The notes under the pieces were generated by a model. That model was not told the DNA's origin and did not search any database. It worked only from the letters and a program-made list of their open reading frames with translations. A stretch of DNA of 63,350 bases, the filler included, from Reticulomyxa filosa (lineage: Eukaryota; Protista; Foraminifera): the NCBI GenBank assembly GCA_000512085.1. It is 23 parts of 23 records of this genome, joined end to end, with 100 filler letters (N's around TTAATTAATTAA, not from the genome) between each part and the next. Parts side by side here need not be neighbours in the genome. Positions count along the whole stretch, not along the records: positions 28,696 to 35,370 come from ASPP01010588.1; 22 more parts are not named here. One strand, written 5' to 3'. Positions 6,080-35,370 of this stretch are shown here, piece by piece (within the stretch, counting starts at the first letter, position 1; each line of letters opens with the position of its first letter). The translations under genes and the position numbers were made by a program.

Positions 6080-6545
6080 CTTAGAAAACGTCTTAGCTTT
6101 ACCAACGTCTTCTCAAATTCAAAGTCAAGCCTAAAATACGGACTTGTTTTTCGCAACAGTCTTCGCAGTTGCTGAACAAACACAATTTATGATGATGTGA
6201 TTCTTGCTATCACAATACAGTCCACTGAATGCAAGTCAAAGCCTTTGTTGACAATGTTAACATTGATCAGCACTTGCAAGTGTCTATTCACAAACTCATC
6301 AACAGTGTCCTGATACACTTATCTGGAGATACAAGATAATGTAATGAGCATGTACGTAGTCCATTGGTTGTGCATAACTCTGGCATTATAAAACAATGAT
6401 ATACAATTGTGGCAACAATTGCCCAGTGGAGTTCATATTGAACAATTCCACGTTAATTGCTACCACTCTTTTGATACAGTGTCCATGCTGTCCATACAAA
6501 GATATTGATGGACAATCACTTGATAATTGAGGTCTGTAACGTACA
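6080..6545 (-). pseudogene. Superfamily-2 helicase C-terminal domain (ResIII/Irc3-like), decayed
   Basis: Minus strand from 6300 reads DEFVNRHLQVLINVNIVNKGFDLHSVDCIVIARITSS*IVFVQQLRRLLRK, i.e. motifs V (EGFD) and VI (QQxGRGLR) with substitutions, an in-frame stop and frameshifts. Confidence 0.75.
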
Positions 6546-6686
6546 TGAAGGCACAAACACATTGTTCTAATTATGTGTATACAAAANNNNNNNNNNNNNN
6601 NNNNNNNNNNNNNNNNNNNNNNNNNNNNNNTTAATTAATTAANNNNNNNNNNNNNNNNNNNNNNNNNNNNNNNNNNNNNNNNNNNN

Positions 6687-6973
6687 TTTTTTTTATTGTA
6701 TGTCTTTTTTTAATTTGAATAGAGATTAGTATTAAACTTAGTTCGAAATTGGACAGTGAAAGCCACATTCTCACTGTCAAATGCACGGATCACACTTCTG
6801 TCAGTTTCAACATGTCTGCCATCTTTATCAATGATTGCCATTAATACATCATCTGCATGTGTTGTTCGAGTAACTTGGAGGATTTGTTGTCTTAAATGCT
6901 TCATTGTCAATTCTGGCAATATGATCGTATGTACGCTTGTCCCATCGCTCACATATGCTTTAAATGACGACAT
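6687..6973 (-). CDS. Hypothetical protein, first exon (MSSFKAYVSDGTSVHTIILPELTMKHLRQQIL...)
   Basis: Coding-like composition after an ATG; runs towards the contig edge; no recognisable family. Confidence 0.4.
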
Positions 6974-7559
6974 TGCACAAAGTAGAAATGATTGAAGTTT
7001 TTTATTATTATTATCAAAAAAAAGGGCTTTTTTTAAGAAACCCCTTTTCTTTGGCATTGATGCACACAAATTAATTTCAAAAGTTTGGATAAATATAAGT
7101 GCTAATAGAATGAAGACATTTTTTTCTAATTTGCGTTAGATTAAAATTTTTAGTGAATACATGTGTTTATCAAACATAAACTTAAAATGATTGATTTTTT
7201 GATTGCATTGCAAAAACAGTCATGGATAAACTCTAATTTGATTATCATGAATGAAATTGATATTATTTTGATTCGATGGAATAAAATCATGTAAACCAGT
7301 TTTATTCAAAATGTAAAACAACAAAGAGTTGATTTTTACGAAAATAAAAATAAACAAGAAATAGTAAATTATATTGAATATTTTCCAACATTTTGAGTAA
7401 TAATTTGTATACTTCCATCATTGGGACCTCTTTTTTTATTTATATTCAAAAATGATCCTCTGTCAGTGATAGATAATTCTTTTCATCATTGAAAATTGTT
7501 GAACCAACACCTGTTATACAAATATTTTTATCTTTTATCTTTGGAGAAATTGCTTTCTT

Positions 7560-8300
7560 TCAATTTTGATATCTATGTAAACAATTCGGATTGTTGCAAT
7601 GAAATTTATTCCAAAATATCGGCTCAATTACATTATCATTATCATAAATGACTTGTTTTGATTTTTAGATATAGGACAAAACTGTTTGTAATTTAACCAC
7701 ATTTTGCAATTCTCTAATTTGTCTAGACACTTCATTAATTCATTTACAATTTCTAATGGATTAATTTGTTTGATTGAAATTAAATTGTATGATTTACCCA
7801 AATGATCTTTTAAATCTTTTATTTTTCCTTTAAAATTGCAGATATTTTTTGAATTCGAATTTGATTTATTCAATATCCTTCTTCTTCTTTTCCTCCTAAT
7901 TTTATTCCTTCATTTGATTGCCTTTTTTTCAAATTAAATTGTCGAGGACAAATTGCTAATAATTCAGACACCAATTTTTTCATAGCTTTACCTTGCGAAA
8001 ATTCACAATGACCATGTTGTTGAATTGGATATTTTCCATTATTCTGCTTCAAATATTTTTGTAAACATTCTTCTCCAACCAAACAAACTTCTCTTCATTC
8101 TCGTGTTCACCACAATTCAATTCCATTGCATTATTTACAATTTGATTGCAAATACAACAAATTAAAGTATTCAGTCTTTGTGCTTCATTTGTCAAAGAAA
8201 TCCATGATTTACTATAACACTCTGAAAGAAAAAAAGCTGTCCTTTTATTTTTCTTTAAGTTTTTCTTCTTCTCTTGTCTTTGTTGCAAATAACGACATTG
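7560..8300 (-). pseudogene. TRAF-like RING/zinc-finger protein, frameshifted
   Basis: Three offset ORFs give LICCICNQIVNNAMELNCGEHEN / VGEECLQKYLKQNNGKYPIQQHGHCEF...LLAICPRQF / CNFKGKIKDLKDHL, a RING followed by a TRAF-type Zn finger. Confidence 0.7.
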
Positions 8301-8659
8301 ATCTTACTTATATAATAATGTATCAACTTTAGTTTAAAAAGGGTTTTGAAGGTGAAACAACAATATAGCATACAATTTTTATGGTAATAATTTACAAAAT
8401 TTGGATAGAATTTTTCAAATCATTATTTTCTTTGCGTTTTTGAAAAAAAGCTTATTACTTCTTACAAAATTAAATATGCACACGCATAAAAGAGATTTAA
8501 AGATCAGTTGGGTGTACATTGTTACAAAAATAATATTTCATCTTTATTGAAAAAATTAGACTATCCACAAATATAAATTAAGGCCTTTCCTGAATAATTA
8601 AAATCCAAATTTTAGATTGACTGAATTGAAATGGAAATCAAAAAACTTTATTAATATAT

Positions 8660-9007
8660 TCATCCCCAAACATAAATTAAATTGTTTGAACCATAACATA
8701 AATTAACACAGCTATTGACATTTGATTTTTTTTCATTGTTGTTTAATCTCTTTTTCAATTCTATAAATTTAAGACATAATACTTTTTTATTTGTATTTAT
8801 CACATACAATTCATTCTTATTTGACCGAATATCCCAAAAACGAATTGTTTTATCATCTGATCCAGAGCATATCACATTTGAATTACCATTAATAACTTCA
8901 CTACTGTTCTTTATAACAAATGGCGAATATTCAACACACGTTACGTCATTTTTGTGCCTATCAAACAATTGAATTTGTTGACCAGATCGAATATCCCACA
9001 AACGAAC
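8660..9007 (-). CDS. WD40-repeat protein, C-terminal part (paralogue of 515-1959)
   Basis: VRLWDIRSGQQIQLF...VEYSPF...NSNVICSGSDDKTIRFWDIRSNKNEL...VWG*, close to the C-terminus of the first WD40 gene. Confidence 0.9.
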   Translation of the reverse strand, partial: VRLWDIRSGQQIQLFDRHKNDVTCVEYSPFVIKNSSEVINGNSNVICSGSDDKTIRFWDIRSNKNELYVINTNKKVLCLKFIELKKRLNNNEKKSNVNSCVNLCYGSNNLIYVWG

Positions 9008-28695: not shown

Positions 28696-29163
28696 TGAAT
28701 GATAACAAATAATAAGAAGAACAACGAAAAGGGGGAGAACCTGACATTCTAGTTTTTTGAATGTTTTCAAAATGTCTTTTGCTTTGATTCCACGACCCAT
28801 ATGTGCGCATTTCTTTTTGTTTGGCTCTTCGTTTTCTTTTTTTGCTTCTGTGTCGTTCTCTTTATCTTTGTCTTTCTCTTCGCTGTCTTTTTTCTCCTCT
28901 TCCTCCTTCTCATTCTCGTTTGTCTTCGTGTTGTCGTTGCCTGCTTGTGCAGCTCCAGTTTTATCTTCTGCTGGGAGTGCTTGCGCTACGTCGTTCGGTT
29001 TTTCTTCTTTTGTTGTCTCATTTTCAGCCGGTGTCACTTTTGCTTCTTCTTTGTTTATTGCAGGTCTTTCATCACACACGTTGGCAAGCACTTGATTGGA
29101 TGAAGAATCAACTGCCCCAGGGACAGGGCTTATTTCAGCAGATATTTCTATTGAATCTGTCAT
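28696..29163 (-). CDS. Hypothetical protein, acidic low-complexity first exon
   Basis: E/K/D-rich ORF from MTDSIEISAE with a probable donor near CQ|gt; no family recognised. Confidence 0.55.
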
Positions 29164-29597
29164 CTTTCGTTCCAATCCTTGAGCAAATGTTTTTTTTTTT
29201 TGGGTTCCTTTCGTCTGTTTGCAAACAAAAAAAAATTGATTGAGAAATTGGCTTGTCTACAGTAAATTAACGCACGAAACTCAATTTTTTTGAGGATGTT
29301 CGATCGTGAAATTAATCGATTTTAAAAACAAACTCTGGTATGGAATCAAACATTTACATAAAGAATGAAAAAAGACACTCGCTTATGCGTTTTAATATGA
29401 AAAAATAAAAATTAATAAAAATATAGGAATATTGTCAAGCAATGAAGCAAAATGTAAAGTTTGACACTGACAATATCAGTTCAAAAAAGGTAAAAAAAGC
29501 AGAAAAAGCGTTTTTTGTTAAGGCAAAAAAAAAGTAACAACGTTACACAAATCCAAACTAAAGAAAAGGAAAACATAAAAAGGCTTAATATTTGAGG

Positions 29598-32500
29598 ATG
29601 GCAATCAGTTTTGCTGCGCCGAATATAAAAGAGCAGTGCCGTTTTGGGCTTTCCATTGGTGCAAGCAAATCTTGCGCCGTATGGAATGACGGAAAAACTG
29701 ATGTGAAAGTTTCGATACCATCATATATGATCTTAAGAGAAAAAGGGGAGCCACTATTTGGGGATGAAGCTGAAATGTACGAACTGGACAATTTAGAAAA
29801 GGAAAAAACGTGTGAATTATGGAAATTGATGACTAACGAGTCAATGCTTGAAGGAGTGACAAAAGAAAAACTACTTTTATTATTTGTGAAGCACATGAAA
29901 GAGAGGATAGAGGGTGCAGCAAAAAAAGAAATGGCAGAAGTTGTAGTGGCGATACCGGAGATATGGGAAGAAGAAGATGCAGAGGGTGACGAAAAAAAGG
30001 AAAAGAAGCAAAAGAAAAAAGCTGTATGTACACATATATAAATCACATTTCCTTTGTTATTTTGTTTTAGAGCCAGAGAAAAAAAAAAAAAAAAGTCAAT
30101 GATAGAGTCACTTGTAGCAAAAGAAATTGGTCTTGCGTCATTGACAGTAATTAACGAAAACGCAGCAGCACTAATTGCGTACAGATTAAATAGCAGCACA
30201 CCCAACAATGAAAAGCGGCAAGTGCTGGTCATAAATATGGGAGGAAAAAATACTACAGTATCTCTCGTGTCCGTGAGCAACAAAAAAATGGAGCAACAGG
30301 CAATAATAAGGACGTTAGGAGGTGATGCATGCACAGATAAACTAGTGGATCATTTTGCAGAAAAGTTTGGAAAACAAAGTACAGTAATAATCGAAAAAGA
30401 CAAGAAAGCCATACAAAGGTTAAAAAAAGCATGCATTCAATTAAAACACAAATTGAGCGCTTCAAAATCGGCAAAAGTGAACATAAAATCGATAGTGGAA
30501 GGAAGTGACTTTGAGTTGGAGATGACCCGAAACGAGTTTTGAAAAAAAACCCCGAGTGTGTGTGTGTGTGTGATGCACGTATACGTACGCTTTATTTATT
30601 TATTTTTTTTTTTTTTTGCTTTGTTTAAAAAAAATGAAAAGATTTGAACTCTTATGCAGCGACATTTACAATTTACTTGAAAAAGCTATCGCACAAGTGC
30701 TGAAAATAGCCAACGCCGCACTCTTTGATGTGACGGATGTAATTATGGCAGGTGGCTCTATTGTAATTCCAAGAGTCAACCAATCAATTCATGAGATGGT
30801 CGAAAAACAACTGCCAAAAGCTCGCATTTGGGAAAGCATCAACGGAGACGAAGTTGTGGCAAATGGAGCAGCAAAGTGTGCAATAGTGATCACGGACAAG
30901 ATGTGGTCATTTGAAAAAGTACAACACGCTTTTGCTGTATCTAAACAAGACGACACTAGTACTGATTCATCCACTCCTGAAGGTAGCTCGGCGGTTCCTA
31001 CTGATACTCTTTCCTCCTCTTTTACATCTGGGGATACTACAATGATCCCTGTTGCCACACCTTCTTCTCCTCTCTTCGTTTATGCCAAATGGGGTCTCTC
31101 CATCGAATTGTCCGAATTTAAAAAAAAGAAGAACAATACCTGGCAGAATTGGCTAAGAAAATGGACTGCAAACCGGAACAATTAACATTAATTTCCCTCG
31201 AAAGTGGCTCTTCTTATATTGGTATCCTATTCATTATTGTTAAAACAACCATACCGAACGCTGACGTACAAGTGTATTGTAGTACGGAACAGTTGGCCGT
31301 CCAGTTCGTGAAAGAATTAAACAATCAATTAAACTCAATAAACTCAAGTGCATTTTCTCAAAACGATACCAAAGTAATTAAAAGCGCAGAACTAGTAAAA
31401 TATTTCCAAAATGATCCCCCCTCCCCCTCTTCATTCGCTGTTCCCATTGACGTAAGCGTTTTATCAGGGTTCGAAAAGTGGTTCGCGGAGAAAGCTCTTG
31501 TTTTGGAATCTGATCTAAAGAGATCCCTCAAACAAGGCCCTGATGACTTTGCAATTCGGAGTATTGTTGTGGTGTACAACGACTCTCTTAAAAACCAATT
31601 TTTGCAAAAACATCAAGAATTACATACAGAGTTTCAATCTTCCATTAAGTTGTTCAAAGCCACTAGCCTAATGAATGTGCCAGGTTTGAAAAAAGACTGT
31701 TTTTTTGTGTATTACATTATTCCTTTTGAACTTTCATCATTCACTTACACACAAACTGCAAATGTTGTAATTATAACTAAGCAATCTTTAATATTGGCCT
31801 TCGAGATATCGGTAAGTTGGACGCTGGTTGGTACGGCCAGGGTCATTACTTTACATCTTATCCTCAATATGCTGCATATTATGCTTGGAAATACAAACGC
31901 CAAACTATTCCTGACACATTTACAATGTTGTGCTTCCTTGCAAATTGTGGCAAAGTCAAAGAGATACGCACACGTGCAGATGGCCAAAATATCACTTTTG
32001 GATTTGATTCTCACTACGTACGAGTCAATCCCCAAGGTAACACCTCTGGCGATCTTGTTTATGACGAATATTGCATTCGTGATAATCGTCCTATCTTGCC
32101 TGTCTTTGCAATCACTTTGAAAAAAATACCCAAAAGACCAATTGTACTTTGGTATATAACCTGAATTTTATTTATTTAACTTGATGTATATATGTTTCTT
32201 GTTGTGCAATCTTGCTTCTTCTTCAATTCACTTTTCAGTTTTTGTGACACAGGAGAGATGCCAAGATTGAAAATTCTGAAAACTCGAGCATTTACAAGGA
32301 GATAGAGGCATATTTGAACGACTCACTAGGGACGTTGCACTGTACAACAACAACTCATGATGCTATAAGTCTTTTGAGACTTCGAGAAGCAAAAAGCAAC
32401 AGCACAATTGTAATCACGAATGGTGCAGACCATGCAAATGTCTTTTTAACAAAACTTCGAAAAGAATTAAATCTGGATTGCCCTGTATTAATATTTTGTA

Positions 32501-32604
32501 AAAATATTCAATATCATATCACATGGGCAGCAAAATTTACGAAAGTGAAATTGACAACGTCAAGGTCATGCGTAATTGAATTTGTAAAACAATACATTAA
32601 GTAA
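29598..32604 (+). CDS. Chimeric protein: degenerate Hsp70-like ATPase domain + linker + PARP-like ADP-ribosyltransferase + C-terminal alpha/beta domain (~4 introns, probable 1-nt error in the A8 run at 31120-31127)
   Basis: Hsp70 NBD motifs VVVAIP, INENAAALIAY, VLVINMGG, LGGDACTDKLVDHF, RLKKACIQLKHKLS, TRNEFELLC, GGSIVIPRV, INGDEVVANGAA; ART motifs LFKATS, DAGWYGQGHYFTSYPQYA, GFDSHYV, YDEYCI..ILP. Confidence 0.75.
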
Positions 32605-32865
32605 TATTTTCGATCAAAAATCTTCCAAAGGATTTAGAATATAACATTGTTAGATTTTGAAATTAGTGCAAGTAGAATTGACTAATTGTAATATCATTGT
32701 TTATCTTAGATTTAATATCATAATTATTGAAAAAAGAGAAAACATTAAATCATTTTTTGCTTTACAAGTGGAAAAAAATATTAAAAATAAATTTTAAAAA
32801 ATATTGACAATGAATGAATATATAGTAAGTTTCAAATTTATTCATATTAAACACTTTAAAATACA

Positions 32866-32950
32866 TTGTAATGCAAAAGAAAGTTGACTCCTAAAACGGC
32901 ACAACATAGAGATAATTGATTTTTCCTATGAATAAACAACATTTAGCGTT
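32866..32950 (+). mobile_element. Tc1-family left terminal-repeat fragment
   Basis: gcaaaagaaagttgactcctaaaacggc...gataattgatttttcctatgaataaacaacatttag resembles 2501-2585 and 38708-38792. Confidence 0.6.
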
Positions 32951-34129
32951 AAAGCTATTTGGATAATCTATGTTTTAAATCTTGCATTATTCGCTATAAA
33001 TATGCTATTTTATTTCATGTGATGTCTGATTGTCACTTTACAGTAAATCTCAATATTTAACATAAATGTTGTAAGTTTCTTAGCGTTTACAAAATTTGCA
33101 ATCATATATAATTACAACTCTTTTATTATTGCTTCTAAACTTTCTACAGTTTTCAGCAGTTTTGCGATTTCTACCCACAGCTTTGTTACTTCGTTGCTTC
33201 CATTTATGTTTTCTTGGTTGTTGTTATTACGACATCGCTATAACTTGATCATTTCTTGGACTTAAAGACCTTTGTCTTTGTGATATTCTTGTTCCTTTGA
33301 TTTAATCGCTTGTTGTTGTAAGTTATACACATTTACTATGTGTCATCAGTGTTTTTTGATTCTTCAATTTGTATATTTACTTTTTGATCTCTTTTTAATA
33401 TCACTAATTTCCAGCCTTCCAAGAAATTCGACAAAAGATTTTAATTAATTTTTGATGACTGTGCAAATAATGTAATCGCTTGAACGATTTCCACTGAATG
33501 CATAGTGATTATATACTTTTTTTTGACGAAAATTTTTTTGACACAAAAAAAACGCAAAATAAACTTCAAAACTGATATATGTTGAAGTATCTAGTTAGCA
33601 TTTGCACAAATCTCTTCAGTAAACAACTTTCCGTAAAATTAGTAATAACGAACGTTGTGTGATTTTTTGTTTATTTTTGAAAAAATCGTTTAAAAGCGAT
33701 TTTTTTGTAGGATGATATTTAATAAATGGAAAGTGGAATTATCACTGCTTGTTTATGGTAGAAAAGACAGTTTCTCTTATCTCTTATTTTTTCCGTCATA
33801 TTGCTTAAGCGGTTATTTCAACTCTTTTCTGGTGATAAAAAATTACATTAAAGTGCACTAATGCTACAATGCATCGCAAAATACTTTTTACTCCAAAAAG
33901 AAAAAAACATTGCCATCAAATACGTGCATTAGTCTAAAAAACTTGGAAAAACGAATGAAAACATGTGAATTCCGTTATGTTATTAGAAAGTGACTATTGT
34001 ATGTTTTAATCGAAATGTGAACAATTTTTTGTTTTTTTGATGGAACACTAAATTTTGATTAAATGAACATTGCAAACATTGAAAAGTGGGAAAGGAGACA
34101 TTTGAGTAAAAAAGCAAGAGCCAATTGTC

Positions 34130-34920
34130 TCAGTTGGCGCAACAACACCAGCAGAGACACCACGGACAGCCTTGTTCAGTCATTCTCCACCAACAAAAGC
34201 GACAAGGGAAGCAGCACATGAGCGTGCAGGATTGGACAAGCAGACAACAAGCGAAGCAGCGATTGGGTCTTTTATTGGCACGTTCTCCTCCACTACAAAA
34301 AAAAATATATATGTACATATAGTATACGTATACACATATAATAGGTTACTTTTCTTTTAAAAAAAAAAAAAGAAATTATGAATTACGTAACGGACAGCCA
34401 TGGAATATATTAGCTCGATCATAATGTCCTTTTTCATATTGCTTTCGACAAAGCCAGCAAAACTCATACTTACAATACGAGCATTTGACGTGATTGCAGC
34501 CTTCTAACTTTTCAATCCTGGCGTGGCACTTTGGACAGAACTGTACGTCCTTGCGTGCGTCCTTGCACCAGAGCTCCAGCTTCTTGTCCGAGACGAAATC
34601 ACACGGCGTGCCGCCGTGCCACGGTAGCGTGCACCGAAAGCAGATTTCGGCCTTGCACTGCGCACACTGCAGCTTCGTCTGTTTGGCCTGCGTGCGGAAC
34701 AGCGGGGTTTCGCACCCGGGTGTCACGCACCAGCGCACGTTCGCATTCTTAGCCAACGCGATATTGCGCGCATAGCGCTTGTACTTGAGCTGCAGCGTTG
34801 TATCAATCAGTTCAAACACCTCGTGTTGTCCAATCACACGCTCGCAATTCGTTTCCATGCATGTCGACGATACAATCCCATTCGATATTTGTTCTTGTAA
34901 ATAATAGCTCATGCATCCTT

Positions 34921-34952
<32 letters not shown>

Positions 34953-35370
34953 TTTATTTGCATCCTTTAGTGCAAGTTATTTTATAAAAAAAATAATAAC
35001 AATGAATAATAATAATAACAATAATAATAATAATAACTTTTCAAAAAGCATGCCCGCATTTTCCTTTGTAAATTTTGTGCAAAGGTCTTTTGACGGTACA
35101 AATCGAACAGAGTTGTGTCACTCCAATGTATTTTTCGTCGTCTTCGTCTTCTCTTTGTTCGCGCGCCTTTTGTTCGTCTCCTTTCGCTGCATGCCTTTCC
35201 GCACTTTGGTCTTGCTTGTCTTCTTCGAGCAACGGCCCGCGCAAGCTGCGCTCATGCGGCATGATCATTGTCTCGCTCGCAAAGGATAGGTAGGGATTCG
35301 ATTGCACGTTCGCCACTTCTTCTTTTTCTCTTTCTCCTATCTCTACTTCTTCTTCTTCTTCTTCTTCTTC
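34130..35370 (-). CDS. RBR (RING1-IBR-RING2) E3 ubiquitin ligase with a Cys-rich C-terminal exon; 5' end truncated
   Basis: CSIC...CGHAF (RING1); RWCVTPGC...CAQCKAEICFRCTLPWHGGTPC (IBR); CPKCHARIEKLEGCNHVKCSYCKYEFCWLC (RING2 with the catalytic Cys). Confidence 0.93.

Follow-up and report, generated by a model that had tools for sequence, protein, structure and literature searches.

Whether a chaperone-derived domain and an ADP-ribosyltransferase (ART) can be carried by one protein chain is the question raised by a locus of the foraminiferan Reticulomyxa filosa (assembly GCA_000512085.1). The locus lies in a stretch of 63,350 nucleotides joined from 23 parts of this assembly (hereafter the window), in which positions 28696-35370 correspond to a whole R. 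filosa contig, ASPP01010588.1 (6675 bp). A first-pass annotation, made from the sequence alone, had proposed that six ORF pieces between 29598 and 32604 join into a single gene fusing a pseudo-Hsp70 ATPase domain to a PARP-like ART. The spliced model of the window gene was compared exon by exon, and fold models of the 3' domains were taken from a natural paralogue, P0002.

We are confident that the locus represents one five-exon gene of ~876 codons, predicted to encode successively a pseudo-Hsp70 nucleotide-binding domain (NBD), a Ser/Thr linker, a TRADD-N/SEA-like adaptor, a PARP-fold ART and a pseudo-receiver, and that at least three Hsp70-ART copies are present in R. filosa. The four domains are all of known kinds; their combination and the K/R-Y-E site of the ART are new. 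A chaperone-derived pseudo-ATPase is here tied to ADP-ribosylation in one chain. Both parts of the two-part layout initially proposed were recovered, while two domains, the TRADD-N/SEA-like and the receiver-like ones, and the replacement of the ART histidine by lysine had been missed.

Structure of the gene

All features of the gene are on the plus strand. Exon 1 (29598-30023, 142 codons) encodes lobe I of the Hsp70 NBD, with a degenerate phosphate-1 loop, a shortened subdomain IB and a charged insert, and shares 59% identity with the paralogue (dN 0.28 vs dS 1.69). It is followed by intron 1 (30024-30095, 72 nt), located at the position of the paralogue's intron and displaying an A16 run before its acceptor. 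This intron had been placed at 30024-~30071 and its failure to close attributed to A-run errors; such an error is unneeded since the intron closes in phase 0 between its donor at 30024 and an AG at 30095. The same acceptor fits the 290-aa model of the depositors, and intron 1 of the paralogue likewise has an A-rich 3' end.

Exon 2 (30096-30535) corresponds to the middle of the NBD, with a degenerate phosphate-2 loop, and intron 2 (30536-30641, 106 nt) coincides with the boundary between two gene models of the depositors. The first part of exon 3 (30642-30909) completes the NBD and leads, with no substrate-binding domain, into a Ser/Thr/Pro-rich linker (30910-31059) which is the least conserved of all segments (30% identity to the paralogue). 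The TRADD-N/SEA-like domain of ferredoxin fold (31060-31379), which contains a frameshift, and the N-terminal half of the ART (31380-31683) follow. Intron 3 (31684-31781, 98 nt, phase 1) separates the latter from the exon encoding the C-terminal half of the ART (31782-32151), and intron 4 (32152-32252, 101 nt) precedes the last exon (32253-32604), which encodes the pseudo-receiver and ends on the same stop codon as the paralogue. Introns 2 to 4, at the coordinates initially annotated, are of GT-AG type and AT-rich, and occupy identical positions in the paralogue, the position of intron 2 being also shared with a further locus, L002. Introns 1 and 2 of the window and of the paralogue often start with GTTTTGAAAA and end with an A-rich stretch before the AG, earlier AGs being skipped, which seems to mislead the gene caller.

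Two other genes are found on the contig. A divergently transcribed gene on the minus strand (28717-29308) encodes a low-complexity, Glu/Lys-rich protein of 180 aa in the depositors' model, with no clear family. On the other side, also on the minus strand (34376-35370), lies a gene for a RING-IBR-RING (ariadne-like) ubiquitin ligase, with an IBR match at 34379-34912 (E 1e-24), only the 5' part of which was called by the depositors. Its RING1 shows an in-frame TGA at a T5-G-A4 run, no GT-AG intron closes the frame, and this TGA is possibly a second sequence error on ASPP01010588.1.

An intact paralogue and other copies in R. filosa

The paralogue P0002 (ETO24810, X6NEQ3; 1024 aa) matches both the HSP70 (E 2e-38) and the PARP (E 5e-8) families of Pfam within one chain, and its alignment with the window covers 29625-32598 in five blocks. 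Its locus, L001, has four introns at the positions of those of the window, and the NBD end, the linker, the middle domain and the first ART half are encoded there by one stop-free exon. Two adjacent genes were rejected, and this exon bears out the proposal that the Hsp70-like and ART pieces belong to a single gene. The same comparison substantiates the suggestion that one additional base in the A8 run at 31120-31127, where the frame changes, joins the two frames: 87 nt separate the anchors flanking this run in the paralogue and 86 nt in the window, one nucleotide fewer, and the proteins are collinear on either side, so the join is correct. In a local profile comparison with an X at the break, the strand preceding the break added little (23.1 vs 20.7 bits), which is indecisive alone. 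Moreover, dN was lower than dS between the window and the paralogue in 9/9 segments compared, located on either side of the break. The architecture had been thought undescribed; no paper on it or on its accessions was found, in a search that reached a minority of subscription papers, but HSP70 and PARP were already both present in the automatic Pfam annotation of X6NEQ3.

A third locus, L002 (ASPP01029445.1), presents the same order: its Hsp70 exons lead into a middle domain of reduced size, after which comes an ART. The depositors divided it into three genes, its C-terminal domain differs from the receiver, and at one point it lacks a single base (45 nt against 46). A fourth ART copy, L003, is truncated by the 5' end of its contig. 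The ART of L004, a 1.2-kb JGI soil contig, shows 44% identity, has no intron 3 and contains an in-frame stop, the contig ending before any NBD. The ART sequences of the window, L001, L002, L003 and L004 constitute one clade (support 100/98). In L002 (2556-3623) and L003 (P0003, P0009), the receiver is replaced by a shared C-terminal domain of ~330 aa with no Pfam match. The paralogue is flanked at L001 by an actin gene and by a gene for a caspase-like peptidase (C14) with TPR (725-1874 and 6469-8751).

Nature of the frame change

The depositors' models divide the locus into two genes. The first, at 29598-30542, gives a 290-aa Hsp70 fragment; the second, named "heat shock 70 kDa protein 14" (ETO22625, P0001), gives a protein of 577 aa in which the 3' half is already connected with the last portion of the Hsp70 domain, by way of an intron predicted at 30983-31128. 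Were these models correct, this 146-nt intron would bridge the two frames and two genes would be split at intron 2. The predicted intron is indeed in phase, of GT-AG type, with an A-rich acceptor as in other introns of the locus. However, its GC content is 45%, compared with 13-33% in the true introns, and its last 60 nt encode the first adaptor strand seen family-wide, with 55% protein identity to the exon of the paralogue and dN 0.30 vs dS 0.74; intron 2, in addition, is spliced in the paralogue's model. The bridging intron was rejected on its GC content and on the conserved coding of these last 60 nt, and is very likely a patch; the depositors' model as a whole is highly improbable. In the databases, these loci are mis-split and wrongly bear the names of ordinary heat-shock proteins.

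The missing base itself could reflect an error of assembly or a genuine lesion. In the latter case the window copy would be a recent pseudogene with a true A8 and a stop at 31185, and the fusion would be made by L001 only, or the window would give an NBD-only protein. The slip is present in the deposited assembly, the database holds one member for the window protein, which comes from ASPP01010588.1 itself, and L002 likewise carries a slip. Conversely, the ~2.6 kb of coding sequence show no disablement other than the slip, which falls in a homopolymer, no splice site is damaged and dN stays below dS on both sides, although a recent lesion would look alike. For these reasons an assembly slip appears a likelier cause than a lesion, and we regard the pseudogene as a somewhat unlikely alternative that retains real weight. 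The four-domain architecture is independent of this question.

A decayed Hsp70 nucleotide-binding domain

The Hsp70 part matches the Pfam HSP70 profile in two blocks, at 30054-30539 (E 9e-27, profile 159-298) and at 30616-31182 (E 5e-13, profile 296-376 of 599). Exon 2 also matches HSPA1A in the PDB (E 4e-19). The second block stops at the end of the NBD, as does the match of the paralogue (profile ~376-377 of 599), which is followed by the linker and the ferredoxin-fold domain; the annotated absence of a substrate-binding domain is thereby corroborated. Exon 1 has no Pfam match and none to DnaK when compared directly by BLAST. It was linked to Hsp70 lobe I through exon 1 of L002 (E 2e-10), a sequence that itself matches both DnaK (E 9e-19) and eukaryotic Hsp70.

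Relative to Hsc70/DnaK, the window has other residues at the equivalents of D10, T13, T14, D199, G203, T204, D206, E268, R272 and R342, and L001 shares most of these changes, with D10/T13 replaced by Ser/Ala and D199/T204 by Asn/Asn in both window and paralogue. The equivalents of K71, E175, K271, S275, G339-S340 and D366 are kept. According to the known mechanism of Hsc70, the loss of such residues abolishes hydrolysis. As judged from these replacements, ATP hydrolysis has probably been lost, and nucleotide binding is doubtful since both phosphate loops are altered. The decay is graded across copies, as the NBD of L002 is less decayed and retains both aspartates (D10 and D199 equivalents). 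Identification of the locus as an ordinary HSPA14 was rejected. The top PDB matches are HSPA1, HSPA8 and HSPA6, and the NBD, devoid of a substrate-binding part, is joined to an adaptor-ART-receiver. NBD-only Hsp70s are also used by bacterial conflict systems (PMC7159879).

A TRADD-N/SEA-like middle domain

In the paralogue model, the middle domain adopts a beta-alpha-beta-beta-alpha-beta fold, and the family alignment reveals a near-invariant GS in the beta2-beta3 turn. Its structural matches are mostly SEA domains, at only middling scores (Z 8.2-8.5, rmsd 2.7-3.4 A), and no TRADD entry was found among the top 50. The Atlas leads are SEA and TRADD-N (0.81). Among 30 family members, one shows a weak TRADD-like_N match (E 0.017) and none a Pfam SEA match.

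Autoproteolysis at GSVVV is known for SEA domains. The GS turn could similarly be a site of self-cleavage, in which case the Hsp70 and ART parts would remain associated after the cut, the ART being released by force or by a partner. The near invariance of GS across the family and the frequency of SEA domains among the top structural matches are in line with this scenario, but no signal peptide or membrane segment was seen by eye and known SEA domains are extracellular. TRADD-N carries the same turn for another use, the GS (uS) motif being there the signature of the domain and a determinant of binding (PMC8195603), and we find self-cleavage quite improbable. TRADD-N domains are adaptors in oyster immune expansions, in which some proteins join them to an HSP70 domain and others to an ART domain (PMC8195603).

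A PARP-fold ART with an altered triad and a pseudo-receiver

Taken alone, the ART exon of the window gives a weak Pfam PARP match (E 0.051), and word-based and PDB sequence searches with the ART exon returned no match. The assignment of the 3' half to a PARP-like ART is upheld by the paralogue, which exceeds the Pfam cut-off (PF00644, 33.1 bits vs 26.7) and whose model matches PARP1 (Foldseek E 2.5e-10) and PARP13 (Z 16.4). The exon at 31782-32151 contains the GxGxY motif, the triad Tyr and the catalytic Glu, both residues being kept in every copy. It is the best conserved segment, with 70% identity to the paralogue and a dN of 0.23.

The first position of the triad displays a contrasted pattern. 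His is present in 124/130 aligned matches and is replaced in the four readable members of the clade, by Arg in L002 and by Lys in the other three (window, L001, L004). The His-Gly pair of the family becomes Lys-Ala (in the ART N-terminal half of the window) or Arg-Pro in the R. filosa clade. An Arg at the equivalent strand binds NAD in ARTs of the R-S-E type. His is described as essential for NAD+ binding in PARPs, and PARP9 and PARP13, which lack it, as inactive (PMC9189837). Turnover of NAD+ by the R. filosa ART is not assured, because the triad His is Lys or Arg in the clade. The K/R-Y-E site constitutes a natural test of whether a basic residue can replace the PARP His.

The C-terminal domain has a receiver fold in the paralogue model (Z 13-15, and 14-15 for the last exon; rmsd about 2 A over about 112 residues). 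At the expected phospho-acceptor, the position of which at the end of beta3 was deduced from secondary structure, Asn is found in 36/41 aligned members, including the window, and Asp in none.

A wider adaptor-ART-receiver family

A search with the ART over 1.84 billion representatives retrieved 185 relatives, the longer ones with clear PARP domains. The adaptor-ART-receiver core is common to foraminifera (Nonionella, Bolivina), bdelloid rotifers (Adineta, Rotaria), the protostelid Protostelium and many environmental contigs, and constitutes an apparently unnamed family. Hsp70-ART fusions were recovered from R. filosa only: none turned up among 150 relatives from elsewhere or in the scans of metagenome and viral contigs, which also yielded no relatives of the ART clade or of the pseudo-NBD. 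Actin-like domains were fused independently to the ART-receiver in a transcript of Nonionella stella (P0010) and in an ORF of a Tara contig (L005 479-3994, P0032). Another member, P0014, bears a villin headpiece on the ART-receiver and forms with these two a cytoskeleton-linked branch of the family. In P0038 and P0067 (Bolivina, Nonionella) the receiver-like domain is N-terminal instead of C-terminal.

Possible functions of the fusion

The best reading of this architecture, which we propose tentatively, is that of a bait or docking NBD coupled to an ART effector, perhaps with a role in stress or defence. An older adaptor-ART-receiver core would have acquired a copy of a cytosolic Hsp70 NBD, in parallel with relatives that gained ubiquitin-like, actin-like or villin-headpiece domains. 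Having lost its hydrolytic residues, the NBD could serve as a bait or docking surface for Hsp70 binders such as co-chaperones or viral or endobiont proteins; the adaptor with its GS turn would pass the binding signal on to the ART. Carrying a basic residue instead of His, the ART might work as a mono-ADP-ribosyltransferase or an NADase and not as a polymerase. A regulatory or docking role independent of phosphorylation would fall to the pseudo-receiver. A sensor-effector organization, as first proposed, is in keeping with the swappable add-ons of the family. The bait-and-effector reading is consistent with the intact paralogue, the third locus of same order, the single well-supported clade, the signature of purifying selection in all compared segments, the folds, the precedent of TRADD-N adaptors and a triad whose first position is always basic and whose Tyr and Glu are kept. 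Counted against it are the recovery of the fusion from one genome only, the 1-nt slip in 2/3 copies, the middling Z of the adaptor's SEA matches with a single weak TRADD-like_N match among 30 members, and the loss of His, as in inactive PARP9 and PARP13 (PMC9189837).

The latter point is central to a second reading, in which the protein is made as a scaffold of two pseudo-enzymes working through interactions only, its ART serving for binding like those of PARP13, TASOR and RCD1. The replacement of His in all readable members of the clade, accompanied by the alteration of His-Gly, fits with this reading given the need of His for NAD+ binding (PMC9189837), as do the degeneracy of both the receiver and the NBD and the presence of PARP13, RCD1 and TASOR among the structural matches, tied with active PARPs. 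On the other hand, every copy retains Glu and Tyr, the C-terminal half of the ART is the best conserved segment, and the replacing residue is always basic, as is the Arg of R-S-E-type ARTs. We hold such a scaffold to be unlikely, if worth keeping in mind.

The fusion could alternatively serve a housekeeping role instead of defence. The NBD, perhaps ATP-bound like Ssz1/HSPA14, would tether the ART to the machinery of chaperones or ribosomes, allowing chaperones or their clients to be modified in stress. There are Hsp70s that act as scaffolds without hydrolysing ATP, the NBD retains some of its adenine-pocket and connect residues (K71, E175, K271, S275, G339 and D366 equivalents), and it is under purifying selection. 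The patchy distribution in a single lineage, the fast divergence of the paralogues (50-60% identity), the swap of the C-terminal domain in L002/L003 and the caspase-TPR neighbour at L001 look more like a conflict-type expansion, and make this role rather unlikely.

Comparison with known systems

The NBD is homologous to that of cytosolic Hsp70s (HSPA1/HSPA8), the best PDB matches of the paralogue (E 1e-33), and keeps the equivalents of K71, E175, K271, G339-S340 and D366. It differs from them by the lack of a substrate-binding domain, the changed catalytic residues, a short subdomain IB and the fused ART core. With Ssz1/HSPA14, which provided the depositors' name for the locus, it shares an NBD that is probably non-hydrolysing; however, the best PDB chains for both window and paralogue are of HSPA1/HSPA8/HSPA6 type, the substrate-binding part is missing, and an adaptor, an ART and a receiver are present.

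Similarly, the PARP fold, the GxGxY motif and the triad Tyr and Glu are common to the ART and to PARP/ARTD proteins (PARP1, tankyrase, PARP10, and the inactive PARP13 and PARP9), while the window family has Lys or Arg for His, has neither WGR nor PARP regulatory domain, and is flanked by a TRADD-N/SEA-like domain and a pseudo-receiver. The latter has the fold of response-regulator receivers but no Asp at the deduced phospho-acceptor position. The middle domain resembles TRADD-N by its RRM/ferredoxin-like fold and the GS motif in the beta2-beta3 turn. In the TRADD-N immune expansions described from oysters, cnidarians and sponges by Kaur et al. (2021, PMC8195603), such a GS-turn, ferredoxin/RRM-like adaptor is combined with variable effector or sensor domains, including HSP70 and ART. 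These are there alternative C-terminal modules behind Death-like domains, whereas both occur in one chain in R. filosa, with no Death-like domain, the assignment to TRADD-N being putative.

The adaptor-PARP-receiver proteins of other organisms share the same three-domain core at 21-37% identity, but have kept the His and carry other add-ons (ubiquitin-like, actin-like, villin headpiece, Sel1/TPR, DUF285), an Hsp70 domain being found in 0/150 matches outside R. filosa. It is conceivable, though doubtful, that integrated-decoy immune receptors extend beyond plants and animals: a dead Hsp70 NBD would bait proteins engaging Hsp70 and switch on the K/R-Y-E ART, in a protist and rotifer family swapping copies of hub proteins (Hsp70, actin, ubiquitin) as sensors. 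The integrated decoys of plant NLRs are decayed copies of hub proteins fused to an effector core. The R. filosa protein has neither STAND NTPase nor LRR and no sequence relation to them, and a decoy role is suggested by analogy. The two resemble each other in logic alone, by joining the decayed copy of a hub protein of the host to an effector core with swappable add-ons, and the wider ART family, with add-ons resembling hub-protein copies, makes decoy-type immunity in protists testable.
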